Source: Chrysemys picta bellii (Eukaryota). Taken from it: a stretch of DNA of 64,000 nucleotides. Where the stretch lies: positions 2,108,001-2,172,000 of the forward strand of contig NC_088802.1 of assembly GCF_011386835.1 (NCBI RefSeq). Reading direction: 5' to 3'. The position numbers and the translations under genes are program-made. The notes below the pieces were generated by a model that was not told where the DNA came from, searched no databases, and saw only the letters and a list, made by a program, of their open reading frames with translations. Below, piece after piece: positions 5,352 to 59,900 of the stretch (the first letter of the stretch is position 1; the number at the start of each line of letters is the position of its first letter).

Positions 5352-6022
5352 TGAAGTGGAATATTGGCTCTATATAAATCCATGGGATGCCCACACCTTG
5401 AATACTGCATGCAGATGTGGTCGCCCCATCTCAAAAAAGATAGATTGGAATTGGAAAAGGTTCAGAAAAAGGCAACAAAAATGATGAGTGGTATGGAACA
5501 GCTGCCATATGAGGAGAGATTAATAAGACTGGGACTTTTCAGCTTGGAAAAGAGGCAACTAAGGGGGGATATGATAGAGGTCTATAAAATCATGAGTGGT
5601 ATTGAGACAGTAAATTTACTCCTTCTCATAATACGAGAACATGGGGCCACCAAATGAAATTAAGAGGTAGCGGGTTTAAAACAAACACAAGAAAGTATTT
5701 TTTCATGTAATGCACTGTCAACCTGTGGAACTCCTTGGCAGAGGGTGTTGTGAAGGCCAAGACTATAACGGGGTTCAAAGGGAGCTAGATAGATTCATGG
5801 CAGATTGGTCCATCAATGGCTGTTAGCCAGGCTGGGCAGGGACGGTGTCCTTAGTCTCTGTTTGCCAGAAGCTGGGAATGGGCGTCAGGGGATGGATCAC
5901 TTGATGATTCCCTGTTCTGTTTATTCCCTCTGGGACACCTGGCATTGGCCACTGTTGGAAGACAGGACACTGGGCTAGACGGACCTTTGGTCTGACCCAG
6001 TATGGACGCTTTTATGTTCTTA
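5352..6022 (+). mobile_element. CR1 LINE 3' fragment
   Basis: ORF 5364..5657 ([44 protein letters not shown]). Ends in a TTATGTTCTTATG tail. Confidence 0.9.
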
Positions 6023-6515: not shown

Positions 6516-7668
6516 TCTAACATAAACGAAGGACTTCCCCAGGTCAGAGATGATGGGGAGGTGATAGGTGGGGAGGGGAGAAAAGTGGGGGGGGGGGAGA
6601 GAGAGGGAGTGACAAAAATCCCACAAAAATGATAAATATCCAAAGGGAAACAATCAGAGACCAATTTCCAACTCGTGTTTCAATTACGTCTCTACATTGT
6701 TGGTCGATTTTCCCCAGTGATTTTTATTTAGTTCCTTCTTTTTCTCTCTTTTCCCCTTCTTCCCGCACTCATAATTTAAAAAAAAACAACATTTGCATGG
6801 TGGACAAAATTCCAATTTTCAGGGGAAAAAAGATTTTCAGAAAAAAAATTAAATTTTAATGAAAAAAATATTGTTGGTTTTTTTTGCGGGGTGGGGAAGT
6901 GTCCCAATTTTCAGGGATAAAATGACACATTTTCATTGGGGAAAAAAATAATGTTCTAAAACAAAATATCAATTTTTTAGGAAAATAACATTTTTTTCAT
7001 GGGGGAAAAAGGTTGATTTTCTGAAAAGCAAATTTTAAAAAATGGTGGTAAGATTTTGGAACATCACTAGGGGACTGAAGAGAAGAGAGAAGTGATGGAG
7101 AAAAGGAAAAGTTTTTACCCAACACATTTTTTCAAAAAAGTCTGAAAACAGACAATTTTTCACACAAAGAAATGATTTAATTAAAAAACAAACAAACAAA
7201 CAAAAAACTTTCTTTGAGCAACTCCAGCCTGCTGGAGCTGTCACGTTGGTCACTCAGACCGATTCCACCGCCCACACGATGCTGAGGTGGGCTAGCGTTT
7301 CTCTTGGAGCTCAGTTAGAAAGAGGGACCAGACACTGCGTTAATTACCCCCACCTGGTCATGCTCCATAGGGAGGCGTTGCAATCACTCCAGAGAGGACA
7401 GGGAAATAACGGATTGAGACATGATATAGTTATACTTCAGGCGTCCCCGGAGAAGGCATTTCCTGAGGATAAGACCATGCCCTAGTAGATTATTCCTTGC
7501 CGTAGAGAGGGCGAGCTGGGTTTTGTTGGGGTTCACATGGACCTTCATGCCGATAGATTTCTTCTGCTGTCCCTCAAACCCTGTGAGCGTCTCCTCCTGT
7601 GGGGAATTTCCTCGTGGCTGCGTGGCGCTGAGTGTGAGGGACTCAGGTAGTGCTGGGTGCGGAGGGAC

Positions 7669-10600
7669 TCAGCGTCGCTGGGCGTGGTTGGACGTGTGTT
7701 CCCTGCCTCCTGGGGTCTGGACTGTAATCTCTGCGTAGTGCAGGCTCTCGCTCTCCACGGCCTCCCGGCTGCCCTGGCCCTGTGTTGGACAGACAGACAG
7801 TGAGGACGCCGTCACCCCAGATCTGGTCTTTTAATTCTGGCCAATCTAGGCCGCTCCCAGGGAGCAAATCCCACAGTGTTACCCCAGATTGGAGGGATTG
7901 GGAGCCAGGACTCCGGGGTTCTTTCCGAGCTCTGGGAGGGGAGTGGGGTCTAGTGGGGTAGAGCTGGGGGCTGGGAGCCAGGACTCCTGGGTTCTCTTCC
8001 CAGCTCTGGGAGGGGAGTGGGGTCTAGTAGGGTCTGGCAGCCAGGACTCCTGGGTTCTCTCCCCTCACTGTATTGTACCAGTCTTTATTGGCATTCGGAG
8101 ACCAGACCCAAGCACTGTCTGGAACAAGGCCCAACCTGCATTGTCTCACCTTCAGCTGCTGTCGGCGAGGCTGCGAGTGGGGCGGCGCTGCACAAGAAGG
8201 GAGAAGAAAGGAACGTTAAAACAGAGGAGTGAGAGAGAGAGTCTGGGGTGAAGAGGGAAGCTGCCAAGATCTAGGGACGGGGGGGAGAAGGAGGGCGAAG
8301 AAAGGACGGGGTGGGGGCGTGGATATATGGACAGACAGCCCAGCATGGACCACAGCGGACAGACGGCCGCTCGGGTGTGTTCAGTAGCAAGGGCCCTGGC
8401 CCATGGGGCCAGGAGGTTAGCGGGGGGAAGGCTCCGGTTCGGTACCTTGGCGTCTCTTCAGGAGGAGGGTGGCCGCCAGGCCAAGGAATAGAAGGAGCCC
8501 CAGGGCGATGGCGACCTGGTACAGGAGCTCCCAGGAGCAGCTCCCTGCGGGAGCAGGTTCTTCACCTGGACGATGGAGAGGACTGTTAGGGGATTCTCAG
8601 CCCCTTGAGCCAGCCAGTCCCCTGCCCTGCGGCCAGAGAGGGGGAAGGCCCCGTGCCCCCATTCCCCACCTCACCTGTGTCACTCTGGTTTCTCCCCATC
8701 ACCTGCAGCTCGGTGCCTGCTCCTGTCCCGCTCTCTCCCTGGTGGATGCTGATCTGACACTGGTAGAGACCAGAGTCCCGCTGCTCCAGCTCCGACAGGG
8801 TCAGCATGGCCTCCCCTTTCTGGAGCAGATCCAGGTGGGACACATTGAGCCGCCCGTTGTAGAAGGGATGGGCAGAATCCAGCACGACTCCAGGCGCTCT
8901 TGTCCAGGTCGCTCTGGCCATGCTGCCCTGTCTGTTCTCGAAGGAGCAGTTGAGTGTCACGGTCTCGCCAGGGGACGCTCGGAGGACAGCGGGGCTCTGA
9001 AGGACTGTGAGACCTTCGTGAACCAGGGCAATAAACATTATAGCAACAAAGGAAAACTACGACGAATGGTATCGAGACACGCCCCAGCCGCCCGAAACCT
9101 TAGCAGCACGGAGATAAGAAGCTTAGCTGGAAAAAATTGTGTGTTCCTGTCCACCTTGCTACTGCTCACAACACTGTCGATAACACATTGCACAGGACTT
9201 TCACTTCCCCCTCCAACAGATACCCCACATCAGCACTGCTATGTGCACGGCAGATGCTCACAGAGACGTTAGCCGTAAAATCACTCAGGACAGTTACGTC
9301 CAAGGCAGACTGTGCAGAGTTGCAAAGGGATCTCACTAGACTGGGTGACAAAATGGCAGATGAAACTCAAAGGTACTAAATGCAAAGTCAGGCCCACTGG
9401 GAAACATAATCCCAACTACACATATAAAATGATGGGGTCTAACTTAGCTGTTACATCTCAAAGAGATCATGGATAGTTCTTTGAAAACATCCGCTCAATG
9501 TGCAGCGGCAGACAAAAATCAAACAGGATGGTAGGAACCATTAGGAAAGGAACAGATAATAAAATGGAAAATATGATAATGCCACTAAATAAATCCAGGG
9601 TACGCCCACACCTTGAATAGTACGTGCCGTTCTGGTCACCCCATCTCAAAAAAAGATACATTAGAATTGGAAAAGGTAGGGAAAAAGGCAACAAAAATGA
9701 TTAGGGGCATGGAACAGCTTCCATATGAGGAGAGACTAAAACACTGGGACTGATCAGCTTAGAAAAGAGATGAGTAAATGGGGGAATATGATAGAGCTCT
9801 ATAAAGAATGGTGTGGAGAAAATGACTAGGGAAGTATTAACTACCACTTCACATAACACAAGAACCAGGGGTCACCCGATGAAATTAACAGGCAGCAGGT
9901 TTAAAACAATCAAAAAGAAGTACTTCTTCACACAACACACAGTCAACCTGTGAAACTCACTGCCAGGGGATGTTGTGAAGGCCAAAAAGGAATTAGATAA
10001 GTTCCTGGAGGATAGATCCATCAATGGCCAAGATGGTCAGGGATGGAACCCCATGCTCTGGGTGTCTCTAAATCTCTGACTGGCAGAAGCAGGGACTGGA
10101 CGACAGGGGATGGATCACTTGATGATTGCCCTGTTCTGTTCATTCTCTCTGAAGCATCTGGCACCGGCCACTGTCGGAAGACAGGATACTGGGCTAGATG
10201 GACCATTGGTCTGACCCAGTATGGCCGTTCTTATGTTCTTGCAGGAGGACTGCAAGTCACACTACTAAAGAAAAGAGGCTGCTCCCTAAGGCAGAGAGGA
10301 ACAACTCACCCCACATTAGTTTAGGCTGGGTCTCTGCAGACTGACTCTGATCACATGGAGACCCCTCGGCTGCAGGCAGGCCCAGGAGACCCGCTTACAA
10401 ATTAAAGTGGCAGCTTGTCAGTTGAACACTTTTAAGTACACCGCAAACACATGCCTCGACTTTATACAATTTGTGCTCCAAGCTACAGGGTGGAAATGTT
10501 TCCCGATGGAACGTTTGTCCCTTGGAAAATGCCGTTTCATTGAGATGACGACAACTTGTTTAGCAATGGGGTGGACGGCACGAAAAAGCGTTTTGATAGG

Positions 10601-12454
10601 GTTGAAAGGGAATGGTTTGATTTTTCAATTTCCAAATTTATTTGTTGTTATATTATTTAAAAAAGAGTCAAAATTGAAATGAAATGCTTCAGTTTTACGG
10701 AAACAGAATACATCTCGTTAACCTGAAATGACATATCCCCGATCTATCCATCCATACATGCACCGATCCTCCACCCCTAGATCCATTGCTATCTATCCAT
10801 CCCTAGCTCTCTGTCTATAGATAGACAGGACTTTGAGTGGATGGTAGCTAGCTAGATACAGATGCCCAGGGATGGAGTATGGATGGATAGATATTAATTT
10901 AGGGGTGCGGTGGATGGGTACATAGATAGAAATATAGATAAGAAGGATCTAGGGGGAGGGATGAATGGTTGGATGGACAGATAGAGATGAATCTAGGGGT
11001 GGAAGATGGCTGGAGGGACAGATAGAAATGGATCTAGGAATGGGGTAGATAGATGGAAGAACAGATGGGGGTGGATCAAAGGATGGGGTAGATGGACATA
11101 TAGAGAAGCATCTAGGGATGGGGTAGATTGTTGCCTGATTTTAGAGGATGGTATATTATTGTAGACTCGCCAATTGATCTGACCAGAAGATAACGAGGTT
11201 CTTGTCCCAGAATGAGGCCACCCAGAATTAAATGCCGTGAGTTCAATATCTTGTAAGGACCTTCGAGGTGGATGACAAGGACACGCAGGCTGAGGAGAAA
11301 TTGCAGCCATAGAGACTTATTAAAATAAGTGAAAACGCTACCAAAGCTCCACAAGGGAATAACACAGCTCTGGGGGGACCTGTCTCATCAGCCTTTACCA
11401 AAGCTTCCTAGATTAGCACCCTCACAGGGGCACCTGGTGGTAAGAGACAACGGACCAGCCTGTCCCTGGCCTGCCAAATGGGTCCGACGATGCTCGAGAC
11501 TGAGGGTGAATATTAGAGCTGAAGGGTCAGATGCTGAGGAGCGAAGTTGACAATAGACAGTGGAGAAACTCAAAAGCTGAAGAAGACGAAGCTGCCTGCA
11601 CATGGCGGGTTGCCCTCCTATAGGATCTCAGCAATATCTTGAATATTCATGCTAGTACCCAACCTTCTGTGCCCAAATCTAACTTCCTCACCCACATCAT
11701 ACTGGGGTGCACTTATTCTATAGCCTAGTGTAGTCACACATGTTAATGCCAATTGCCTCATTCTCAAACCTGTTATTTCTTTCCCAATCTGGTTTCCGGT
11801 CGTTACTTCCACATTCCTGTGGTGTCCCGTGTGGAGTCCCAAGTTTCTTAGATAAACATGTCTAGTTCCCCAAAATCTAAAAGGGTATCGGTTAGGCCAT
11901 ATATCTGAGCCTAAGTTCACCAGCCCCCTTAACCGTACAGATGCTCACTTGCTGAAGCTAAACATACAGGATACAGGCCTGTAGGACCCGTTACAGCCAA
12001 ACATAATAACATAATCCAGTGCAAACATACAAGGCAAATATACCAAAGCAAACCAATAAATAAAGGCAGAACATAATAAAGCAAGCCAGCAGGTTAGCCC
12101 TCTGGCCTACAGGTGGACTGACAGAGATGGATCTAGGCTTGGGGCAGATGGACAGAAGGACAGAAAGAGATGGATCTAGGCTTGGGGCAGATGGACAGAA
12201 GGACAGACAGAGATGGATCTAGGGATGGGGCAGATGGACAGAAGGACAGACAGAGATGGATCTAGGGATGGGGCAGATGGACAGAAGGACAGACAGAGAT
12301 GGATCTAGGGGTGGGGCAGATGGACAGAAGGACAGAGATGGATCTAGAGATGGGGTAGGTGGCTGGATGAACACATTAAATTAGTACCTGCTGTCCAGGT
12401 GGGGATGAAGAAGAGGATGCAGAGGACGGGGCTCAGGGCTGGCAGCTGCTCCAT
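7669..12454 (-). CDS. NCR3-like: NKp30/NCR3-like V-type Ig receptor, inhibitory form (ITIM), gene 1, 224 aa
   Basis: complement(join(7669..7779,8150..8187,8446..8565,8675..9013,12388..12454)). Leader [23 protein letters not shown] domain with C..W..DSGLYQC and [38 protein letters not shown]. Tail [13 protein letters not shown] then [21 protein letters not shown]. All introns GT-AG with compatible phases and no stops. Confidence 0.85.
9197..9208 (-). promoter_or_regulatory. Candidate ETS-IRF composite element (GGAAGTGAAAGT) in intron 1 of the receptor gene
   Basis: Exact match in all five paralogs (also 36191-36202, 40293-40304, 44970-44981, 59172-59183). Fits the GGAAnnGAAA EICE consensus. 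Confidence 0.45.
9303..10248 (+). mobile_element. CR1 LINE 3' fragment in receptor intron 1 (antisense to the gene)
   Basis: CR1 RT-like sequence (GTGTACGCCCACACCTTGAATAG, GAGAAAAGATGAG) with a TTCTTATGTTCTT tail. Shared with the paralogous introns. Confidence 0.85.
12121..12355. repeat. 43-bp VNTR in receptor intron 1
   Basis: Unit CTAGG(N)TGGGGCAGATGGACAGAAGGACAGACAGAGATGGAT, about 5 copies. Confidence 0.9.
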
Positions 12455-15400
12455 GGTCCCCGCTCTCTGGGCGGCTCCGTGCGGCCACCTCAGCTCAGCT
12501 TCAGCATCCTCCGCAAGTGTCAGCCCCAGGGGGCGGTGGAAAGTTTTGTGGTCAGCACTTCTGAGATGGCTGCAGCGAGAGGCCGGGGATGAGGGCCGGA
12601 TGGGTATGTGTGTGTGTGTGTGTGTGTGTGTTTGAGCATGTGCTATTCACTGTGTTAGGGACTGGCTGGTGTGTGCGTGTGTGTGTGTGTGTGCGTGAAT
12701 CCAACTGCTCCCTAGAATCAGCCGCATTCATCTGTGTCTCCTATCCCCTGTACTGCGTGTGACTGAGGAGGATTCCCCTTACTTAGACTGGGGCAGTTGG
12801 GGTGTTTAGAGCTGGGGCATCTGGTCTGATGCCCCGCCCGGCTGCCTGGCGCAGGGGGCAGCACAGCAGCAGCTGGCATCTCCTGGAGCATCCTGGCTTG
12901 GTGGTGGTCCCCAGGAGCAGCTCCCCGGCCAGGGCTGCGTCCTACCCTGGGCCACAAATCCCTGCTCTGCTCTCAAACCAGGGGGGCTGACGGGCGTGAA
13001 TTCCCACCCTGGGTCGGCGATCCGGCCCTGTCAACTTTCCATGTCTTTTTCATCGGCTCTGTCACGAGACATTTCTAACCAGACATTGTCCTTAGCGCCA
13101 CAACCTTGAATGGTTGGCCAACAGCTACACCACACTGCTGGCTAGCGATATTCGGAGGAGCTGTCAGGTTGCAGGTAGTTGTGATGGGGATTTGGGGTAA
13201 TTTGGAGTCATTTTCCGTCCAAAACGACCCCGCCAAATTGTACGTGTGGCTGCGGGTGGGTAAAATCTTCCCCGTCAGCAGCTGCATTTCAGTCACCGCC
13301 CCCGGAGCCGCCCCCCATCTCCCTTTACCTCCGGGAAGTCATATTTTCTTGGATGACTTATCTCCGCTGGCTGAGACATGCCAACGTGCCATCGCTCCCA
13401 CCCACTGCCGCGCCAATCACCCCCAGCTCGGGTGGCCAATTTTGGTTGGACGTATTCCTGGAGATTCCATCCCATGACATAACCCTTAATTAAAGATTAA
13501 CCCTGAATTGCTGGAGACTCCAGGACAATGGTGGAAGATTGGCAACCCTAGGCCTCAGATGACAGCCTGGTTGTGGATAGGGGTGGGCGCAGAAGGGATG
13601 GCGCCTAGCGACTCAGAGTGAAGGTGTCCAGTGGTAGGTGGGCTCCCAGGAAGGGGTCTGAGAGTGGAGGGGCAGACGGGGCGATTGTGTTGAGGGGCTT
13701 TCTTGGGGTGTTGTTTTGTCCACTGACCCTGGTCGTTTCACGACCTGCTTTGGGTGTTAAATTTGACAAGGGGTGCTTGTGAATCTATCTGCAGCTGTGG
13801 GGAGAGAGTGAGGAGAGGTGGAGCTGGGGGGAGGGCTGGGTGTCAGGACTCCTGGGTTCTATCTTAGGTCTGGTTAAGTGTGGTCTAGCAGAAAAAGACT
13901 CCCAGCCCCCCTGACTCTAACCCACTAGTCCCCACTCCCCTCCCAGAGCTGGGAGAGAACCCAGGAGTCCAGACCCTTTGCCATCCTTCAGTTCAGGTCT
14001 GTGCACAGCCCATCTTTCTTGGGGGGGACCCATGAGGAGGGCATCCATTTGTTACTTGTACTTTCTGCAGTTTCTGTGGTGGGCTGAAACATGCCAAGTT
14101 GCTCGAGGCTCTGTCTTCACGTTCACTGCTGCGCCCCGTGGTGAGAAACAGGAAATTCAGCATCTTGCACGGCCGCAGCTTTTGCAAAGGTGGCAGCAGT
14201 TGGGGCTGGGGAGGGGGTGAGTTACAATCAGCTACAGAAGTGTCGGAGTCCGGGGCACATACGACGCACAAATAACTGACCACGGTTTCCGTCCTGTGAG
14301 CCGGAGGCGATCTCCAGGCGCTCAGTTTGCAGTGCCAAAAATGCTTTTAGCCCTCATGGGTGCAAAGAAATCTTTCCAGCCAGGGGCGGGTGGGACCCAC
14401 GCCTGAGTCTGCAGAGAGCCTGAGCTGGTCGCTCTGAGAGGGGGGAGCTGCCTCATGTGTGATCCAGGCAGTGATGGGAGTGGCCTGGCTCGGGGTGAGG
14501 GGGTGAGGGTCTAACCTGCTACAATTTTACTTTCCACCCAAATTTCCAATTTCTCACCTTTTTCAGGAGAAAAACATTCACAAGACATATATATATTTCC
14601 GAGTGCAAAGAAAAGAAAATATGTTCCATAAATTGAACTACCAATGGGGTGAAGCTTGACAGGTATTTTTATATATATAACATTATTTTTCTCAAGAAAA
14701 ATAATTATTTTCCATAAATGCAGCTAGCACTGGGGTGGAGCATAGCATGTCAGCTATTATATATAGATGTAAACACACACACACATATACGCAAATACAC
14801 ACACACACTTTTTGTCCACAAGAAAACACATCATTTACCATGATTTTTTTCTGAAAATATTTTTGCTAAAGAGAAACATTGTTCCCAAAGTATTTTCCTT
14901 TTTAAAATCATATCATTTTTGTCAACAAGAATAGTTCACAAAGATATTTTTTCTGTTGAAAGCCATTTCTGCACGGAAAGAACATTTCCCAGGAGAGAGT
15001 TTTCATTAAAAATGCTTTATTTAAAACATATTAAAATAAGATTTTATCACAAGCTCTTGTGCTCCAGAAATGTTTGACTGGATAGAACTGTTTTTAAATA
15101 AGCTAAGGGAAAACCTCCGGGCCAGATCCCAGCCGGTGTCAAGCGGCCGCACCTCCACTGAGCTCAGTTGGGCCAGGTACTGAGTTTCTGGAAATCCGTT
15201 CCATGGAAGTCAGAAGCGCTACGGCCGACTGATCCCAGCAGGGATCTGGCCCCATTGACTTGGAGGGAGCTACGGCCAATTGACTCCCTTGCTGCTTGTT
15301 TCTCCTGCGTTCGCTCTCGCCCCTGCAGTGTTCTCCTTGGGTTTCTGCGTCTTCTCCCTCTGCTGCTGGACGGGACCAGGACACTCTCCTGCTGCTCCGT

Positions 15401-17415: not shown

Positions 17416-20309
17416 TCAGGGCCTGGACTCCCCTGGTCCAACATCCTGGTAGCCCCTGGAAGGAGAGAGCAGAGGGGATGGGTTAGGGGGTGTAACGGAC
17501 CCACCCCCACCCCAGAGAGGGGAGGACTCACCTGCGTCTGCTCCGCCACAGCACCACGGCCATGGCGGCTACGGCCACAACCCCCAGGGTGATGCCCACG
17601 ACCAGGCCGGGGCCCCAGGGCCTGCTCTGCTCTGTAAAACAGGGGGTGCCGTGCTGGGAACGGGGACAGGAGTGTGGGCCCTGTTCCATCAGCCTTCCCC
17701 GCAGCCCCCTTCTGCTCTCCCCGCCCCCGACCCACTGCCTGCAGCCCTTCACCCTGATCCTGTTCCTTCAACATCCCCCGCAGTCTCCCCCGATCACCCC
17801 ACCCCGACCCACTGCCCTCAGCTTTTGCCCTACCCAAAATCTCTTCTTTCAGCCTCCCCCACCATCCCATTCCCCTCGCTCCCCCTGCTGTCCCACCCCC
17901 TCAACTTCCCCCCATTCCAGTCCTGCTCCCCTCTGTCTCATCCCCTCCAGACCCTCTCCCTCTCCCCAACCCCCCGATCCTCTCCAGCACAGCCCCATTG
18001 TCTCCCCTGCCCCACTCCACACAGCTCTCTCTACCCTGTCCCATTCAGGCTCCCCTCAGCCCCTACCCTGCTCCCCCCATGCCAGTCGGGTCCCCCTCAG
18101 TTCCTCCACCCTGCTTCCCCCGGTCCATCCCCACACCCGCCGAAACCCTCGACCTCCCTCCGCCCCAATCCCGCTGCCTGGACCCACCCCTGTCTCACTG
18201 AGGATGTGCCGGAAAAGCCCTCAGAGACCACGACCCCCCCCACCCCCCCTCCGGGGACGTGCACCTACCCCAGGGGACCAGCAGGCTCCGGCCCCCCAGG
18301 CTGCTGTGCTGCACCCGGCAGGCGTAGCTGTGCCCGGCACCCGGCTCCACGGCCAGGGAGCTGCGCAGCTGGTAGGTCAGGTCCGCGTTGGGCAGGATCC
18401 CGCTGGAGTTCAGCCACCAGCCCGGCCCCACCTCCTCCCCGTCCTGCAGCCAGGCCACGCGGACGGGCCGGGGGTAGAAACCGGTGACCCGGCAAACCAG
18501 CAGTACCGGCGCGGGGGTCCCGGCTGAGGGAGGCGCTCGGGCAAACACCACGGCGACCGGCCGCTCTGAGACAGGAGGAGAGAGACGGGGCGGGGGAGAG
18601 GGGACGATTCAGTCTGAGCCTCAGGGACTCACTAGCCAAGCCCAGCTCCATTCCCCGGGGTCAGGCGTTGGCCCCGCTGTCCTGGCCAGACCCCAATTCT
18701 GCCCCCTGCCGTTACCAGTGGTGACGGAACCCCCTTCACTTCCTGTCCTAAACTGCTGTGCAGTGCGGCTATGATATGGCTACTGTGCTGCACCCCAGAT
18801 ATAGCTGCATTTGTACACCAGGCAAGGGGGCCCTGGATAAACAGCCCTTGTGCCCCACCCCAGAGGTGGCTGCATCTCCACAAGCGGGGAGGGGTGTCCA
18901 GCCTCACCTTGCCTCTCCAGAGACTCTTTCCCATACTGGACAAAGCTCTTGATCAGATTGACACACGTCATTCTCAGGAGAAACTGAAGCGTGATGGCCA
19001 CAACCCGGTTGTAGTTAAGAATCTCCTGGGCTTTGAGAGTCAGTTTATCCCCCTGGCGAGCGACCCATTTGCCGCTCTCCGTGTCAAAGCTGACAAAGTC
19101 CTCGCCGTTCATCCCAGCATCACAGAATCCCCTGGGAGTGCCATTGGGGTGGAGCTCGCAGCCCTCGGTGAACTGGGTAACAAAGGGGTCTGGAACAGGA
19201 AGGGCAGGGGGTCACCGGAATGGGGGGAGACGGCAGAAAGAGGGAGACACCCAGCGCAGACCCTGGGCTGAGCCGCTGGGCAGAGCCGTGCTGGGTTCTG
19301 TCCCATGCCCTGGGGCAGCGCTGGCTGGGAGGGTGGGGGAGGCATTAGCTCAGCTCTGCGTTTCCTGCCCATGTCTCAGTTTTCAGGTTCAGGCAGGACA
19401 GGTGGCACCTTGGGCAGCCTCCCCCCTCGTTTCCACTTCCCCCTCCTTCGACAAAGGCCTTGGGTAGGGCACATGAAAGACCATGAGCCTAGGGTCAGGG
19501 GCTGGGACATGGGGCCTTTCCCCTCTAGGGCGCACAGGCTACAATCCGGCCCCAGAGTGGGGGACTGGCTCAGTGGATGGAGAATGGGATGTGGGGCCTT
19601 TCCCCTCTAGGGGAAGCTGGCTCCATTCAGCCTAAGGGCCAGGGACTGGCTGTCTTGCCCCTGATCCACCCTATCAGGACACACTCAGTTGCTGTGGGGA
19701 GCGTGTCAGTTCTCAGCTCCCTGGTGGGTGCGGGAAGGGACCCCCCTCAGACTGCGCCATACTCACAGCCCTCTCCTTCTTGCTTAACCAGATCGTTCAC
19801 CATACGGATGAAGTTGGACAGATTGTTATAGATCAACTTCTCCAGGTCCTGCCACTGCTTTGGGGTCAGGCCCTGCTGGGCCCAGGGCTGCAGGAAGCGG
19901 ACCTTGCAGGTCCTGCAGTCCAGGGAGTGAGTCTCCAGGTCGCCCAGCAGGGCCGTCCCCTGCATGTCCGTGGAGCTGGCGTTGTGGAAGATGATGGTTT
20001 GGAGCAGCCGGAGAGTGAGAGACTCTGTGGGGACAGGAGGGGAGGCTGTGGGGAGGGGAGAGGAAACAAGTGGAGGATAAAGCAGTTGGGGAGAGAGATT
20101 AATGAGTCTCAGTCTCCTTAACACTCCCTGCTGACCCCTAACCCGTCTCCCCCCTCCTCCTACACCCCCAGCGAGGGTCACTAGCCCAGCGTGGTGCTGC
20201 CCCATCCTGGCATTACATCACACCCCCCAGTAGCAAAAAGGGAGGGGGGTCCCCACTTACCGTCCAGAGCCCCCCATGCCCAGGGCAGGAGCAGCAGAGG
20301 GAGCAGCAT
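17416..20309 (-). CDS. CD1: CD1-family MHC class I-like lipid antigen-presenting heavy chain
   Basis: complement(join(17416..17455,17532..17631,18269..18565,18908..19189,19767..20045,20261..20309)). Leader MLLPLLLLPWAWGALD. alpha1 LRLLQTIIFHNAS..LGDLETHSLD. alpha2 starts with the CD1-typical YPFVTQFTEGCELHPNG and has TC near its end. alpha3 C1 domain LLVCRVTGFYPRPVRVAW..YACRVQH. TM GLVVGITLGVVAVAAMAVVLW. Tail RGYQDVGPGESRP*. GT-AG introns, phases consistent, no stops. Confidence 0.9.
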
Positions 20310-48599: not shown

Positions 48600-49905
48600 G
48601 GTGAGGGGCTGGGAGCCAGGACTCCTGGGTTCTCTCCCCGGCTCTGGGAGGGTGTGGGGTCTAGGGGTTAGAGCAGGGGAGGCTGGGAGCCAGGACTCCT
48701 GGGTTCCCTCTCCGGCTCTGGGAGGGTGTGGGGTCTAGGAGTTAGAGCAGGGGGAGGCTGGGAGCCAGGACTCCTGGGTTCTCTCCCCGGCTCTGGGAGG
48801 GTGTGGGGTCTACGGGTTAGAGCAGGGGGAGGCTGGGAGCCAGGACTCCTGGGTTCTCTCCCCGGCTCTGGGAGGGTGTGGGGTCTAGGGGTTAGAGCAG
48901 GGGGAGGCTGGGAGCCAGGACTCCTGGGTTCTCTCCCCGGCTTTGGGAAGGTGTGGGGTCTAGGGGTTAGAGCAGGGGGAGGCTGGGAGCCAGGACTCCT
49001 GGGTTCTCTCCCTGGCTTTGGGAAGGTGTGGGGTCTAGGGGTTAGAGCAGGGGCAGGCTGGGAGCCAGGACTCCTGGGTTCTCTCCCCGGCTCTGGGAGG
49101 GTGTGGGGTCTAGGGGTTAGAGCAGGGGGAGGCTGGGAGCCAGGACTCCTGGGTTCTCTCCCCGGCTCTGGGAGGGTGTGGGGTCTAGGGGTTAGAGCAG
49201 GGGGAGGCTGGGAGCCAGGACTCCTGGGTTCTCTCCCCAGCTCTGGGAGGGGAGTGGGGGCTGGGGGGTTAGAGCAGGGGGAGGCTGGGAGCCAGGACTC
49301 CTGGGTTCTCTCCCCGGCTCTGGGAGGGTGTGGGGTCTAGGGGTTAGAGCAGGGGGGGCTGGGAGCCAGGACTCCTGGGTTCTCTCCCCGGCTCTGGGAG
49401 GTGAGTGGGGGCTGGTGGGTTGGAGCAGGGGGAGGCTGGGAGCCAGGACTCCTGGGTTCTCTCCCCGGCTCTGGGAGGGGAGTGGGGGGCTGGTAGGTTA
49501 GAGCAGGGGGGCTGGGAGCCAGGACTCCTGGGTTCTCTCCCCGGCTCTGGGAGGGTGTGGGGTCTAGGGGTTAGAGCAGGGGGAGGCTGGGAGCCAGGAC
49601 TCCTGGGTTCTCTCCCTGGCTCTGGGAGGTGAGTGGGGTCTAGGGGTTAGAGCAGGGGGGGCTGGGAGCCAGGACTCCTGGGTTCTCTCCCCGGCTCTGG
49701 GAGGTGAGTGGGGGCTGGTGGGTTGGAGCAGGGGGAGGCTGGGAGCCAGGACTCCTGGGTTCTCTCCCCGGCTCTGGGAGGGGAGTGGGGGGCTGGTAGG
49801 TTAGAGCAGGGGGGCTGGGAGCCAGGACTCCTGGGTTCTCTCCCTGGCTCTGGGAGGGTGTGGGGTCTAGTGGTTAGAGCAGGGGGAGGCTGGGAGCCAG
49901 GACTC
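48600..49905. repeat. GC-rich minisatellite of 74-75 bp
   Basis: About 17 copies of GGGGTCTAGGGGTTAGAGCAGGGGGAGGCTGGGAGCCAGGACTCCTGGGTTCTCTCCCCGGCTCTGGGAGGGTGT. Confidence 0.95.
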
Positions 49906-56995: not shown

Positions 56996-59900
56996 ATGGA
57001 GCAGCTGCCAGCCCTGAGCCCCGTCCTCTGCATCCTCCTCTTCATCCCCACCTGGGCAGCAGGTACTAATTTAACGTGTTCATCCAGCCACCTACCCCAT
57101 CTCTAGATCCATCTCTGTCTTTCTGTCCATCTGCCCCAAGCCTAGATCCATCTCTGTCTGTCCTTCTGTCCATCTGCCCCACGCCTAGATCCATCTCTGT
57201 CTGTCCTTCTGTCCATCTCCCCACGCCTAGATCCATCTCTGTCTGTCCTTCTGTCCATCTGCCCCAAGCCTAGATCCAGCTCTGTCTGTCCACCTTGTAG
57301 CCCAGAGGGCTAACCTGCTGGCTTGCTTTATTATGTTCTGCCTTTATTTATTGGTTTGTTTTGGTATATTTGCCTTGTACGTTTGCATTGGATTATGTTA
57401 TTATGTTTGGCTGTAACGGGTCCTACAGGCCTGTATCCTGTATGTTTAGCTTCAGCAAGTGAGCATCTGTACGGTTAAGGGGGCTGGTGAGCTTAGGCTC
57501 AGATATATGGCCTAACCGATACCCTTTTAGAGTTTGGGGAACTAGACATGTTTATCTAAGAAACTTGGGACTCCACACAGGACACGGCAGGAATGTGGAA
57601 GTAACGACCGGAAACCAGATTGGGAAAGAAATAACAGGTTTGAGAATGAGCCAATTGGCATTAACATGTGTGACTACACTAGCCTATAGAATAAGTGCAC
57701 CCCAGTATGATGTGGGTGAGGAAGTTAGATTTGGGCACAGAAGGTTGGGTACTAGCATGAATATTCAAGATATTGTTGAGATCCTATAGGAGGGCAACCC
57801 GCCATGTGCAGGCAGCTTCGTCTTCTTCAGCTTTTGAGTTTCTCCACTGTCTATTGTCAACTTCGCTACTCAGCATCTGACCCTTCAGTTCTATTGTTCA
57901 CCCTCAGTCTCGAGCATCGTCGGACCCATTTGGCAGGCCAGGGACAGGCTGGTCCGTTGTCTCTTATCACCAGGTGCCCCTGTGAGGGTGCTAATCTAGG
58001 AAGCTTTGGTAAGGGCTGATGAGACAGGTCCCCCCAGAGCTGTGTTATTCCCTTGTGACGCTTTGGAAGCTTTTTCACTTATTTTAATAAGTCTCTATGG
58101 CTGCATTTTCTCCTCAGCCTGTGTGTCCTTGTCATCCGCCTCGAAGGTCCTTTACAAGATGTTGAACTCACGGCCTAGTCCATCTAGCCCAGTATCCCGT
58201 CTCTGACAGTGGCCGGTGCCAGATGCTTCAGAGGGAATGAACAGAACAGGGCAATCATCAAGTGATCCATCCCTGTCGTCCAGTCCCTGCTTCTGCCAGT
58301 CAGAGGTTTAGAGACACCCAGAGCATGGGGTTCCATCCCCGACCATCTCGCCATGGATGGATCTATCCTCCAGGAACTTATCTAATTCCTTTTTGAGCTC
58401 AGTGATACTTTTGGCCTTCACAACATCCCCTGGCAGTGAGTTTCACAGGTTGACTGTGTGTTGTGTGAAGAAGTACGTCTTTTTGCTTGTTTTAAACCTG
58501 CTGCCTGTTAATTTCATCGGGTGACCCCTGGTTCTTGTGTTATGTGAAGTGGTAATTAATACTTCCCTTGTCATTTTCTCCACACCATTCTTTATAGAGC
58601 TCTATCATATTCCCCCCTTTACTCATCTCTTTTTTAAGCTGATCAGTCCCGGTGTTTTAGTCTCTCCTCATATGGAAGCTGTTCCATGCCCCTAATCATT
58701 TTTGTTGCCTTTTTCCGTATCTTTTCCAATTCTAATGTATCTTTTTTTGAGATGGGGTGACCAGAACGGCACGTACTATTCAAGGTGTGGGCGTACCCTG
58801 GATTTATTTAGTGGCATTATCATATTTTCCATTTTATTATCTTTTCCTTTCCTAATGGTTCCTACCATCCTGTTCGATTTTTGTCTGCCGCTGCACATTG
58901 AGCGGATGTTTTCAAAGAACTATCCATGATCTCTTTGAGATGTAACAGCTAAGTTAGACCCCATCATTTTATATGTTTCCCAGTGGGCCTGACTTTGCAT
59001 TGATCACCTTTGAGTTTCATTTGCAGTTTCGCTGCCTGGTCTAGTGAGATCCATTTGCAACTCTGCAGAGTCTGTCTTGGACTTACCTGTCCTGAGTGAT
59101 TTTACGTCTAACGTCTCTGTGAGCATCTGCCGTGCACATAGCAGTGCTGATGTTGGGTATCTGTTGGAAGGGGAAGTGAAAGTCCTGTGCAGTGTGTTAT
59201 CGACAGTGTTGTGAGCAGTAGCAAGGTGGACAGGAACGCACAATTCTTTCCCCTTAGCTTCTTATCTCCGTGCTGCTAAGGTTTCGGGCGGCTGGGGCGT
59301 GTCTCGATACCACTCGTCGTAGTTTTCCTTTGCTGTTATAATGTTTATTGCCCTGTGTGACGAACTGGGCCTGTTCTCACTGTGGTGTGTGAATGCTGAC
59401 AGGGGAGTGTGCTGGGATAGTCTGCATTGGAGGATGGGATCTGCCCGGGGGCGCATTCCTGAGCTTGTAACATGAGAACCCAGGAAGGGGTTGAAGGCCA
59501 GGTGACTCCTGAGCCCGGGAAACTGAAAAAAGGCTGTGGGAGGGGTCGCTGAAGGCAGTGTGCTGGAAGCAGGCTGGAGAGATGGCTGGGAGGCAGAGAT
59601 GGCTCTGACCTCCCAAGGGGGGCTGGGCTGGGATGCCCGGGGACCCCAAGATGGACCTAACTGAGGGGGTCCCTGTTGTCAGTGCCTGCAAGACCTGTCT
59701 TGGACTGTATTCCTGTCATCCAAATAAACCTTCTGCTTTACTGGCTGGCTGAGAGTCATGGTGAATCGCAGGGAGCCAGGGGTGCAGGGCCCTGAGTTCC
59801 AGTTGTCACGGAGTATTGGGGAACTCAGGGCCCTGCACCCCTGGCTCCCTGCGATTCACCATGACTCTCAGCCAGCCAGTAAAGCAGAAGGTTTATTTGG

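Follow-up and report, generated by a model that had tools for sequence, protein, structure and literature searches.

NKp30 (NCR3) has been studied almost exclusively as an activating receptor of mammalian natural killer (NK) cells. The XMIV genes of Xenopus were reportedly described (Ohta, 2006; Flajnik, 2012) as an expanded NKp30-like family linked to the major histocompatibility complex (MHC), possibly including both activating and inhibitory receptors. The human NKp30 protein contains an Arg residue within its transmembrane (TM) segment, signals via CD3-zeta or FcR-gamma, and carries no signalling motif of its own (PMC6514059). Another natural cytotoxicity receptor, NKp44, contains a TM Lys and is coupled to DAP12; its inhibitory motif of the immunoreceptor tyrosine-based kind (ITIM) recruited no phosphatases in a study cited by the same review (PMC6514059). 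In this study we analyzed a stretch of 64,000 nucleotides (nt) of the turtle Chrysemys picta bellii (contig NC_088802.1, positions 2,108,001 to 2,172,000), referred to below as the window, which contains a cluster of five NKp30-like genes. All coordinates are those of the window; gene 1 was read directly on the minus strand, and genes 2-5 are located on the plus strand. It is probable that gene 1 is an intact, transcribed member of an expanded, MHC-linked NKp30 (NCR3)-like family, and that it encodes an inhibitory type I membrane receptor.

Gene 1 is composed of five coding exons. The leader exon (12388..12454, minus strand) starts with an ATG at 12454, encodes a signal peptide and ends with a phase-1 GT donor after 12388; it accounts for residues 1-22 and the first base of codon 23. 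The immunoglobulin variable (IgV; VJ-type) domain is encoded by a single exon of 339 nt (8675..9013, minus strand; residues 23-135), which is in phase 1 at both ends. This is followed, on the same strand, by (i) a stalk/TM exon of 120 nt (8446..8565; phase 1/1; from residue 136), (ii) a cytoplasmic exon of 38 nt (8150..8187; phase 1 in and 0 out; from residue 176), both with AG/GT borders, and (iii) the last coding exon of 111 nt (7669..7779; residues 189-224), which has an AG acceptor, starts in phase 0 and comprises 36 codons plus a TGA stop. With these phases (1, 1/1, 1/0 and 0) the exons join in frame. The gene corresponds to an already annotated NCBI model, P0001, [quoted passage not shown] (224 amino acids, aa), and an exon-by-exon comparison (local script) showed the translations of the window exons to be 100% identical to P0001 over all 224 residues. 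Exons were used individually as search queries, and the database protein P0001 in full-length searches.

A previous, sequence-only reading of this DNA had proposed that the TM, 38-nt and 111-nt exons join in phase, and this is borne out by their borders and phases, by the match to P0001 and by the contig joints described below. Its remark that none of these exons appears in frame among the predicted open reading frames (ORFs) does not hold for the last exon, which is seen as an ORF of 48 aa once the cut-off is lowered. The start of the IgV exon (9013) and the leader exon (12454-12388) were added here from the annotated model; a leader of the same type is also present in the Pelodiscus protein P0060. 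No Pfam match was obtained with the TM and tail exons, as expected. Downstream of the stop codon, a probable 3′ untranslated region (UTR) covers 7420..7668 (minus strand). Its end is approximate: contigs of runs X1 and X3 continue past the stop to about 7422, and the end is uncertain because no canonical poly(A) signal was found before 7181, nor near the end of contig coverage.

Contigs (not reads) assembled from four public runs were placed on positions 7001-13000 of the window. They revealed three joints with GT..AG borders on the minus strand, removing 7780-8149 (runs X1 and X2), 8188-8445 (runs X1 and X3) and 8566-8674 (run X1). All three coincide exactly with the predicted intron borders, and the runs that show them originate from two organisms and two studies. 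Since such joints cannot arise from genomic DNA other than a processed copy, the runs hold spliced RNA of gene 1 or of a very close copy. We confirm that gene 1 is a real, spliced and intact gene, whose 224-codon frame is open and whose splice sites are all canonical.

The joints listed do not include the leader-to-IgV junction (12388/9013). In one X1 contig, the leader donor (12388) is instead connected to a site near 9102, some 90 nt upstream of the annotated acceptor 9013, a link that would include an in-frame stop (9059-9057). A number of models in the databases, P0067 and P0014 among them, begin at an ATG equivalent to 9038 and are thus without a signal peptide; such starts are probably an annotation artefact. 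The contigs also differ from the window in codon 25 of the tail (window 7707), which is GGC (Gly) in the window and CGC (Arg) in all X1, X2 and X3 contigs as well as in gene 4. The reading of the contigs is shared by 35 of 41 other distinct turtle tails, the remainder having Cys, His or Arg, and Gly is present in the window only. This Gly may be either a private variant of the reference, or a sign that a close copy gave rise to the contigs. Isoforms predicted for a number of turtles (P0003, P0010, P0020, P0021, P0027, P0035) have the IgV exon joined directly to the 38-nt exon and the ITIM tail. Such skipping of the TM exon would give a soluble form, and in the window it keeps the frame, because both junctions are in phase 1.

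The stalk of gene 1 contains one free Cys residue (Cys145), and a stalk Cys is kept in both the inhibitory and the activating types of the family. The TM segment consists of 21-23 hydrophobic residues, with no Arg, Lys, Asp or Glu and with Gln152 inside, and is followed by the basic stop-transfer sequence KRRQ. The cytoplasmic tail comprises 50 residues. Its sole tyrosine, Tyr203, lies within the sequence LHYAEI (residues 201-206; codons at 7726..7743, minus strand), detected by a six-frame motif search, which fits the pattern of a cytoplasmic ITIM, (I/V/L/S)xYxx(I/V/L).

The extracellular part of gene 1 was assigned to the V-set by Pfam (E = 1.1e-11, full model covered). The exon at 9013-8675 encodes a single V-set domain, complete with a J-like G strand, G-A-G-T-E-L-Q-V (GxGTxLxV). 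When solved structures were searched, human NCR3 was the best single-domain match other than antibodies (E = 8e-7 with a single sequence and 1.3e-8 with a profile), although immunoglobulin (Ig) light chains and the summed domains of the polymeric Ig receptor (pIgR) reach equal or higher scores. In a HMMER search, 1.84 billion representatives were scored with a profile built from nine turtle proteins. After the turtle paralogues, it retrieved proteins named NCR3 or NCR3-like by their sources from nurse shark, horn shark and frog, as well as single-V receptors of alligator, frogs and geckos. Word-based protein searches, performed with the IgV part and with the TM/tail part, returned turtles only, and the alligator, frog, gecko and shark proteins came up solely with the full HMMER search. 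The NKp30-like assignment made in the sequence-only reading probably holds. The functional hallmark of mammalian NKp30, the TM Arg, is replaced in gene 1 by Gln152; this argues against the protein working like mammalian NKp30, not against common descent.

Gene 1 shares with mammalian NKp30 one VJ-type IgV domain in one exon, a short stalk, a single TM segment, a short tail encoded on small 3′ exons and, probably, linkage to the MHC. It differs in having Gln at the homologous TM position and an ITIM, and its V domain is only modestly similar (E about 1e-8), no more so than Ig light chains are. Among non-mammalian proteins, nurse-shark NCR3, a horn-shark NCR3-like protein and a frog NCR3 belong to the nearest relatives outside turtles. 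Several of the non-mammalian relatives combine an uncharged TM segment with ITIM-like tail motifs (VEYATI, LEYSTI, LTYAQV; LHYAEI or LQYAEI in frogs), such tails being present in both the nurse-shark and the horn-shark proteins. Unlike the motif itself, the rest of these tails is unrelated to that of gene 1, and the shark motif stands at the second position, not the first. The description of the family as one usually regarded as activating is therefore a mammal-centred view: it is true of mammalian NKp30 only, and the turtle cluster holds both types.

In its layout the cluster resembles the classical paired families (KIR, LILR, PILR, SIRP, CD300 and chicken CHIR), in which near-identical ectodomains are mounted either on a charged TM segment with a short tail or on an uncharged TM segment with an ITIM tail. 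Clustering of the genes, rapid duplication and the presence of pseudogenes are further common traits. The V domain of the turtle genes is of another lineage, however, their location is different (probably the MHC versus the leukocyte receptor complex and other regions), and each gene 1 chain has one ITIM. A more specific resemblance is to SIRP-alpha, whose SHP-2-binding tail stretch reads ITYADL...HTEYASI (PMC5589908). Chelonia P0067, Pelodiscus P0100 and alligator P0129 contain xxYA(E)I followed by (H)TEYAS(I/V), the older form being LHYAEI...TEYASI. The spacing is 13 residues in these relatives of gene 1 versus 24 in SIRP-alpha, and in gene 1 the second motif has decayed (His for Tyr). This likeness is a resemblance that may be due to convergence, as such motifs recur in many ITIM receptors. 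Isoform 1 of NKp44 (NCR2), likewise a natural cytotoxicity receptor, also has one V domain and an ITIM in its tail, but gene 1 lacks its charged TM residue. A literature search, whose coverage did not extend to the key Xenopus and B7H6 papers, found no paper on ITIM-bearing NKp30-like genes of turtles.

From these features a mode of action can be proposed. Binding of a ligand would bring the gene 1 receptor beside activating receptors, and on co-engagement a Src-family kinase would phosphorylate Tyr203. The phosphorylated ITIM would then recruit an SH2 phosphatase (SHP-1/SHP-2, or SHIP), which would damp signalling by immunoreceptor tyrosine-based activation motifs (ITAMs), while the missing TM Arg would prevent coupling to ITAM adaptors. 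A disulfide dimer formed through Cys145 might help tandem SH2 domains to bind, although this step is purely conjectural. We infer phosphorylation, phosphatase recruitment and the inhibitory outcome, as well as the cell type and the ligand.

We next consider how far the tail motif has been conserved. A BLAST retrieval in which no tyrosine was demanded gave a set of 42 distinct turtle tails. All of them have Tyr and Glu(+2); position -2 is L, V or M (L or V in 38/42), and at +3 two tails have F and the others I. The same architecture is kept in at least 12 turtle species, including the soft-shell Pelodiscus. The more distant Chelonia paralogue P0067 has 14 of 36 tail residues in common with gene 1, all six of LHYAEI among them. 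LHYAEI or LHYSEI is present in Pelodiscus P0100, alligator P0129 and frogs P0155 and P0213, and LHYAEI also in Pelodiscus P0060; another frog has LQYAEI and a gecko LNYVEL. In an alignment of ten sequences, no columns beyond the Ig fold are near-invariant except L201, Y203 and E205, and L-x-Y-x-E is the only conserved island in tails that are otherwise about 25-40% identical (Pelodiscus, the Chelonia paralogue, alligator and frogs). The tyrosine on which the sequence-only reading depended is kept in all 42 turtle tails, and in the alligator, frog and gecko relatives too.

That reading had also deduced purifying selection from the identity of the motif in genes 1 and 4. The identical ITIM and the same exon structure on the opposite strand, with KT instead of TV after the motif, are indeed present in gene 4, but they are not evidence of selection, because the duplication is recent and introns and UTR are equally similar. 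The two genes form an inverted duplication alignable over 3 kb. They are identical at 93.6% of positions in the IgV exon, 87.5% in the TM exon, 92.1% in the 38-nt exon and 96.4% in the coding sequence of the tail, compared with 94.5, 92.1 and 90.6% in the three introns and 94.4% in the first 470 nt of the 3′ UTR. At the 7.1% divergence of their non-coding sequences, the chance that 18 bases are identical is considerable (P = 0.26). Moreover, the four nucleotide differences in the tail are all non-synonymous (T to K, V to T and G to R), giving a synonymous rate (dS) of 0 and a non-synonymous rate (dN) of 0.05. This pair was consequently rejected as a test of selection. The orthologue of Macrochelys (locus L002) was rejected with the same outcome: the whole gene, introns included, is about 90-93% identical to gene 1, and six of the eight differences in the tail are amino-acid replacements (dN/dS about 1.3; P = 0.18 for the motif). 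Such pairwise tests fail because turtle DNA is too similar. Chelonia locus L001 aligned to gene 1 over the IgV exon only. The conclusion of purifying selection on the motif nevertheless appears to stand, supported by the deeper comparison (Tyr in 42/42 tails, the conserved island in distant relatives and the ITIM-like tail ends of shark NCR3 proteins) and not by the identity of genes 1 and 4.

Several observations weigh against gene 1 being a transcribed, NKp30-related inhibitory receptor. The status of the runs as RNA is only a guess, and at some sites (e.g. 7707) their contigs do not agree with the window, so that some of them may derive from other species or close paralogues. When the V domain of P0155, a frog protein, was compared with solved structures, it matched the T-cell receptor delta chain and SIRP and did not match NCR3; the frog proteins should therefore be regarded as relatives of VJ type that the turtle profile retrieved, and their orthology to NKp30 is not established. 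Purifying selection is not seen in the turtle tails taken as a whole (dN/dS about 1 or more), and conservation at shallow depth means little when introns have changed no more than exons. Each gene 1 chain contains one ITIM. Tandem-SH2 phosphatases bind best to two phosphotyrosines, and a dimer via Cys145 or another partner would therefore be needed. Finally, the sequence Y-A-E-I also fits a YxxPhi sorting signal.

This last point leads to the least improbable of the rival explanations, namely that the principal role of Y-A-E-I is in sorting or endocytosis, as a tyrosine-based signal of the YxxPhi type recognized by AP-2, which sets the surface level of the receptor and does not recruit phosphatases. 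By sequence alone YAEI satisfies this pattern, the tail has a single tyrosine, and the -2 residue varies among turtles (L, V, M), M being non-canonical for an ITIM. On the other hand, -2 is L or V in all but four of the 42 tails, deep relatives pair the motif with a nearby second one, (V/T)xYxx(V/I), which is typical of tails with an ITIM and an immunoreceptor tyrosine-based switch motif (ITSM), and gene 1 lies beside paralogues with a TM Arg, in the classical layout of paired receptors. We consider a predominant sorting role unlikely; sorting and ITIM roles do not, in any case, exclude each other.

According to a second explanation, gene 1 is a young, effectively neutral duplicate heading towards a pseudogene, in which the motif is intact through recent copying or gene conversion combined with the slow substitution rate of turtles. 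The pairwise comparisons described above fit this, as exons are no more conserved than introns (gene 1 with gene 4, and gene 1 with Macrochelys) and dN/dS ranges from 0.6 to 1.3; the neighbouring gene 2 has already acquired an in-frame stop, and the window has its private Gly at tail codon 25. A decaying copy would hardly be reconciled, however, with an open frame of 224 codons and canonical splice sites throughout, with the existence of spliced transcripts, with an architecture kept as far as Pelodiscus, or with conservation of the motif in much older relatives, and we regard this explanation as quite improbable. The weakest of the rivals, a dual or activating receptor whose stalk Cys or polar TM Gln mediates pairing with an adaptor or an Arg-TM paralogue, and whose tyrosine acts as the kind of switch motif suggested for NKp44 isoform 1, draws on the stalk Cys conserved in both types, the homologous TM exons, the older relatives that combine TM Arg with ITIM tails, and the charged TM segment and ITIM of NKp44-1 (PMC6514059), but is very improbable given that gene 1 has no Arg, has L and not the T of a switch motif at -2, and retains no adaptor-binding feature.

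Gene 1 has two derived features. The TM exons of the inhibitory and activating genes are homologous, with an invariant Tyr151. All activating forms have Arg as the next residue, as does the older type with an ITIM (P0067, P0100, P0102), while the gene-1 type, Pelodiscus P0060 included, has Gln. The older type, the alligator protein and the frog proteins also contain a second motif, (V/T)(E/T)Y(A)(S/P)(V/I), about 13-25 residues past the first. At this place gene 1 has E-H-T-S-N-H, with His for Tyr. We infer that these two changes, TM Arg to Gln and loss of the second tyrosine motif, would make gene 1 a dedicated inhibitor. A more speculative scenario, which we put forward tentatively and consider possible, not probable, is that the LHYAEI tail is ancestral (dating at least to the ancestor of turtles and crocodilians, and perhaps to early tetrapods), with an original form that joined a TM Arg to a two-tyrosine, SIRP-alpha-like tail able to dock phosphatases. 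In turtles, two dedicated types would have emerged from this dual receptor, inhibitors of the gene-1 type (Gln in place of Arg, no second Tyr) and activators (tail lost), and mammalian NKp30 would be the activating remnant of an inhibitory or dual receptor.

Some models of the relatives have unusual TM regions. In those of alligator P0129 and Eretmochelys P0041, a TM segment of the Arg type precedes one of the inhibitory type and an ITIM tail; annotation may have fused two adjacent genes, or a single gene may possess both TM exons and use them as alternatives. In the frog proteins whose tails are of the LHYAEI type (P0155, P0213, P0194), the predicted TM segment includes a Glu, an unusual feature in an inhibitory receptor.

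The remaining genes of the cluster place gene 1 (12454-7669, minus strand; inhibitory type) in the company of activating-type neighbours with near-identical IgV domains, a TM Arg and a short tail without tyrosine. Activating-type TM and tail exons are located downstream of the IgV exons of genes 2 and 3. Gene 2 (36396-37407, plus strand; IgV exon 36396-36722) has an in-frame stop at the conserved Trp of its IgV domain and is a probable pseudogene. Gene 3 (plus strand) comprises an IgV exon (40498-40824; 91% aa identity), then an Arg-TM exon and a short tail exon (41573-41629). Gene 4 (42664-46441, plus strand) is of the inhibitory type, with all exons intact: (i) a leader exon (42664..42730), detected by tblastn with the P0001 leader (87% identity), (ii) an IgV exon (45163..45501) and (iii) a stalk/TM exon (45611..45730) encoding an uncharged TM segment with Gln, both with AG/GT borders and an open frame, (iv) the 38-nt exon (45985..46022), also with AG/GT borders, and (v) the last coding exon (46331..46441), with LHYAEI at 46367-46384. 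Gene 5 (plus strand; leader at 56996, IgV from about 63923) extends past the end of the window. Gene 1 would thus represent the inhibitory half of a paired-receptor system, in a turtle cluster that appears to hold both types. Between genes 1 and 2, within a GC-rich block (16-24 kb, 64-71% GC), lies an ORF (19750-20205, minus strand) with a domain of the MHC-I family (PF16497, E = 2e-15).

Paired activating and inhibitory receptors are a well-known design, and the additional interest of gene 1 is modest, residing in the age of the tail motif and in the Arg-to-Gln change; general principles are unchanged by the finding. At the turtle locus, the family to which NKp30 belongs takes the form of a paired-receptor system of several genes, probably linked to the MHC, in which the members of the inhibitory type are apparently transcribed and retain a tyrosine motif of considerable age. 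It offers a way to ask what the first role of NKp30-type receptors was, and to test for an origin of activating forms from inhibitory forms, which has been suggested in other paired families. Tail peptides and Gln/Arg TM variants are candidate reagents for reptile immunology.

The locus is also rich in repeats. The intron between the 38-nt and the last exon of gene 1 contains, at 7891-8064, two copies of a unit of roughly 75 nt, which also forms a long tandem array at about 48.6-49.9 kb (48600-49870), just downstream of gene 4. Since its depth in the runs is in the thousands, this unit is a high-copy, transcribed repeat. An interspersed repeat is present in intron 1 of gene 1 (9576-10240) and, near the other gene copies, at 5361-6021, 58178-58820 and 35092-35597, these repeats being 76-93% identical. 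Its depth in the runs is up to tens of thousands.

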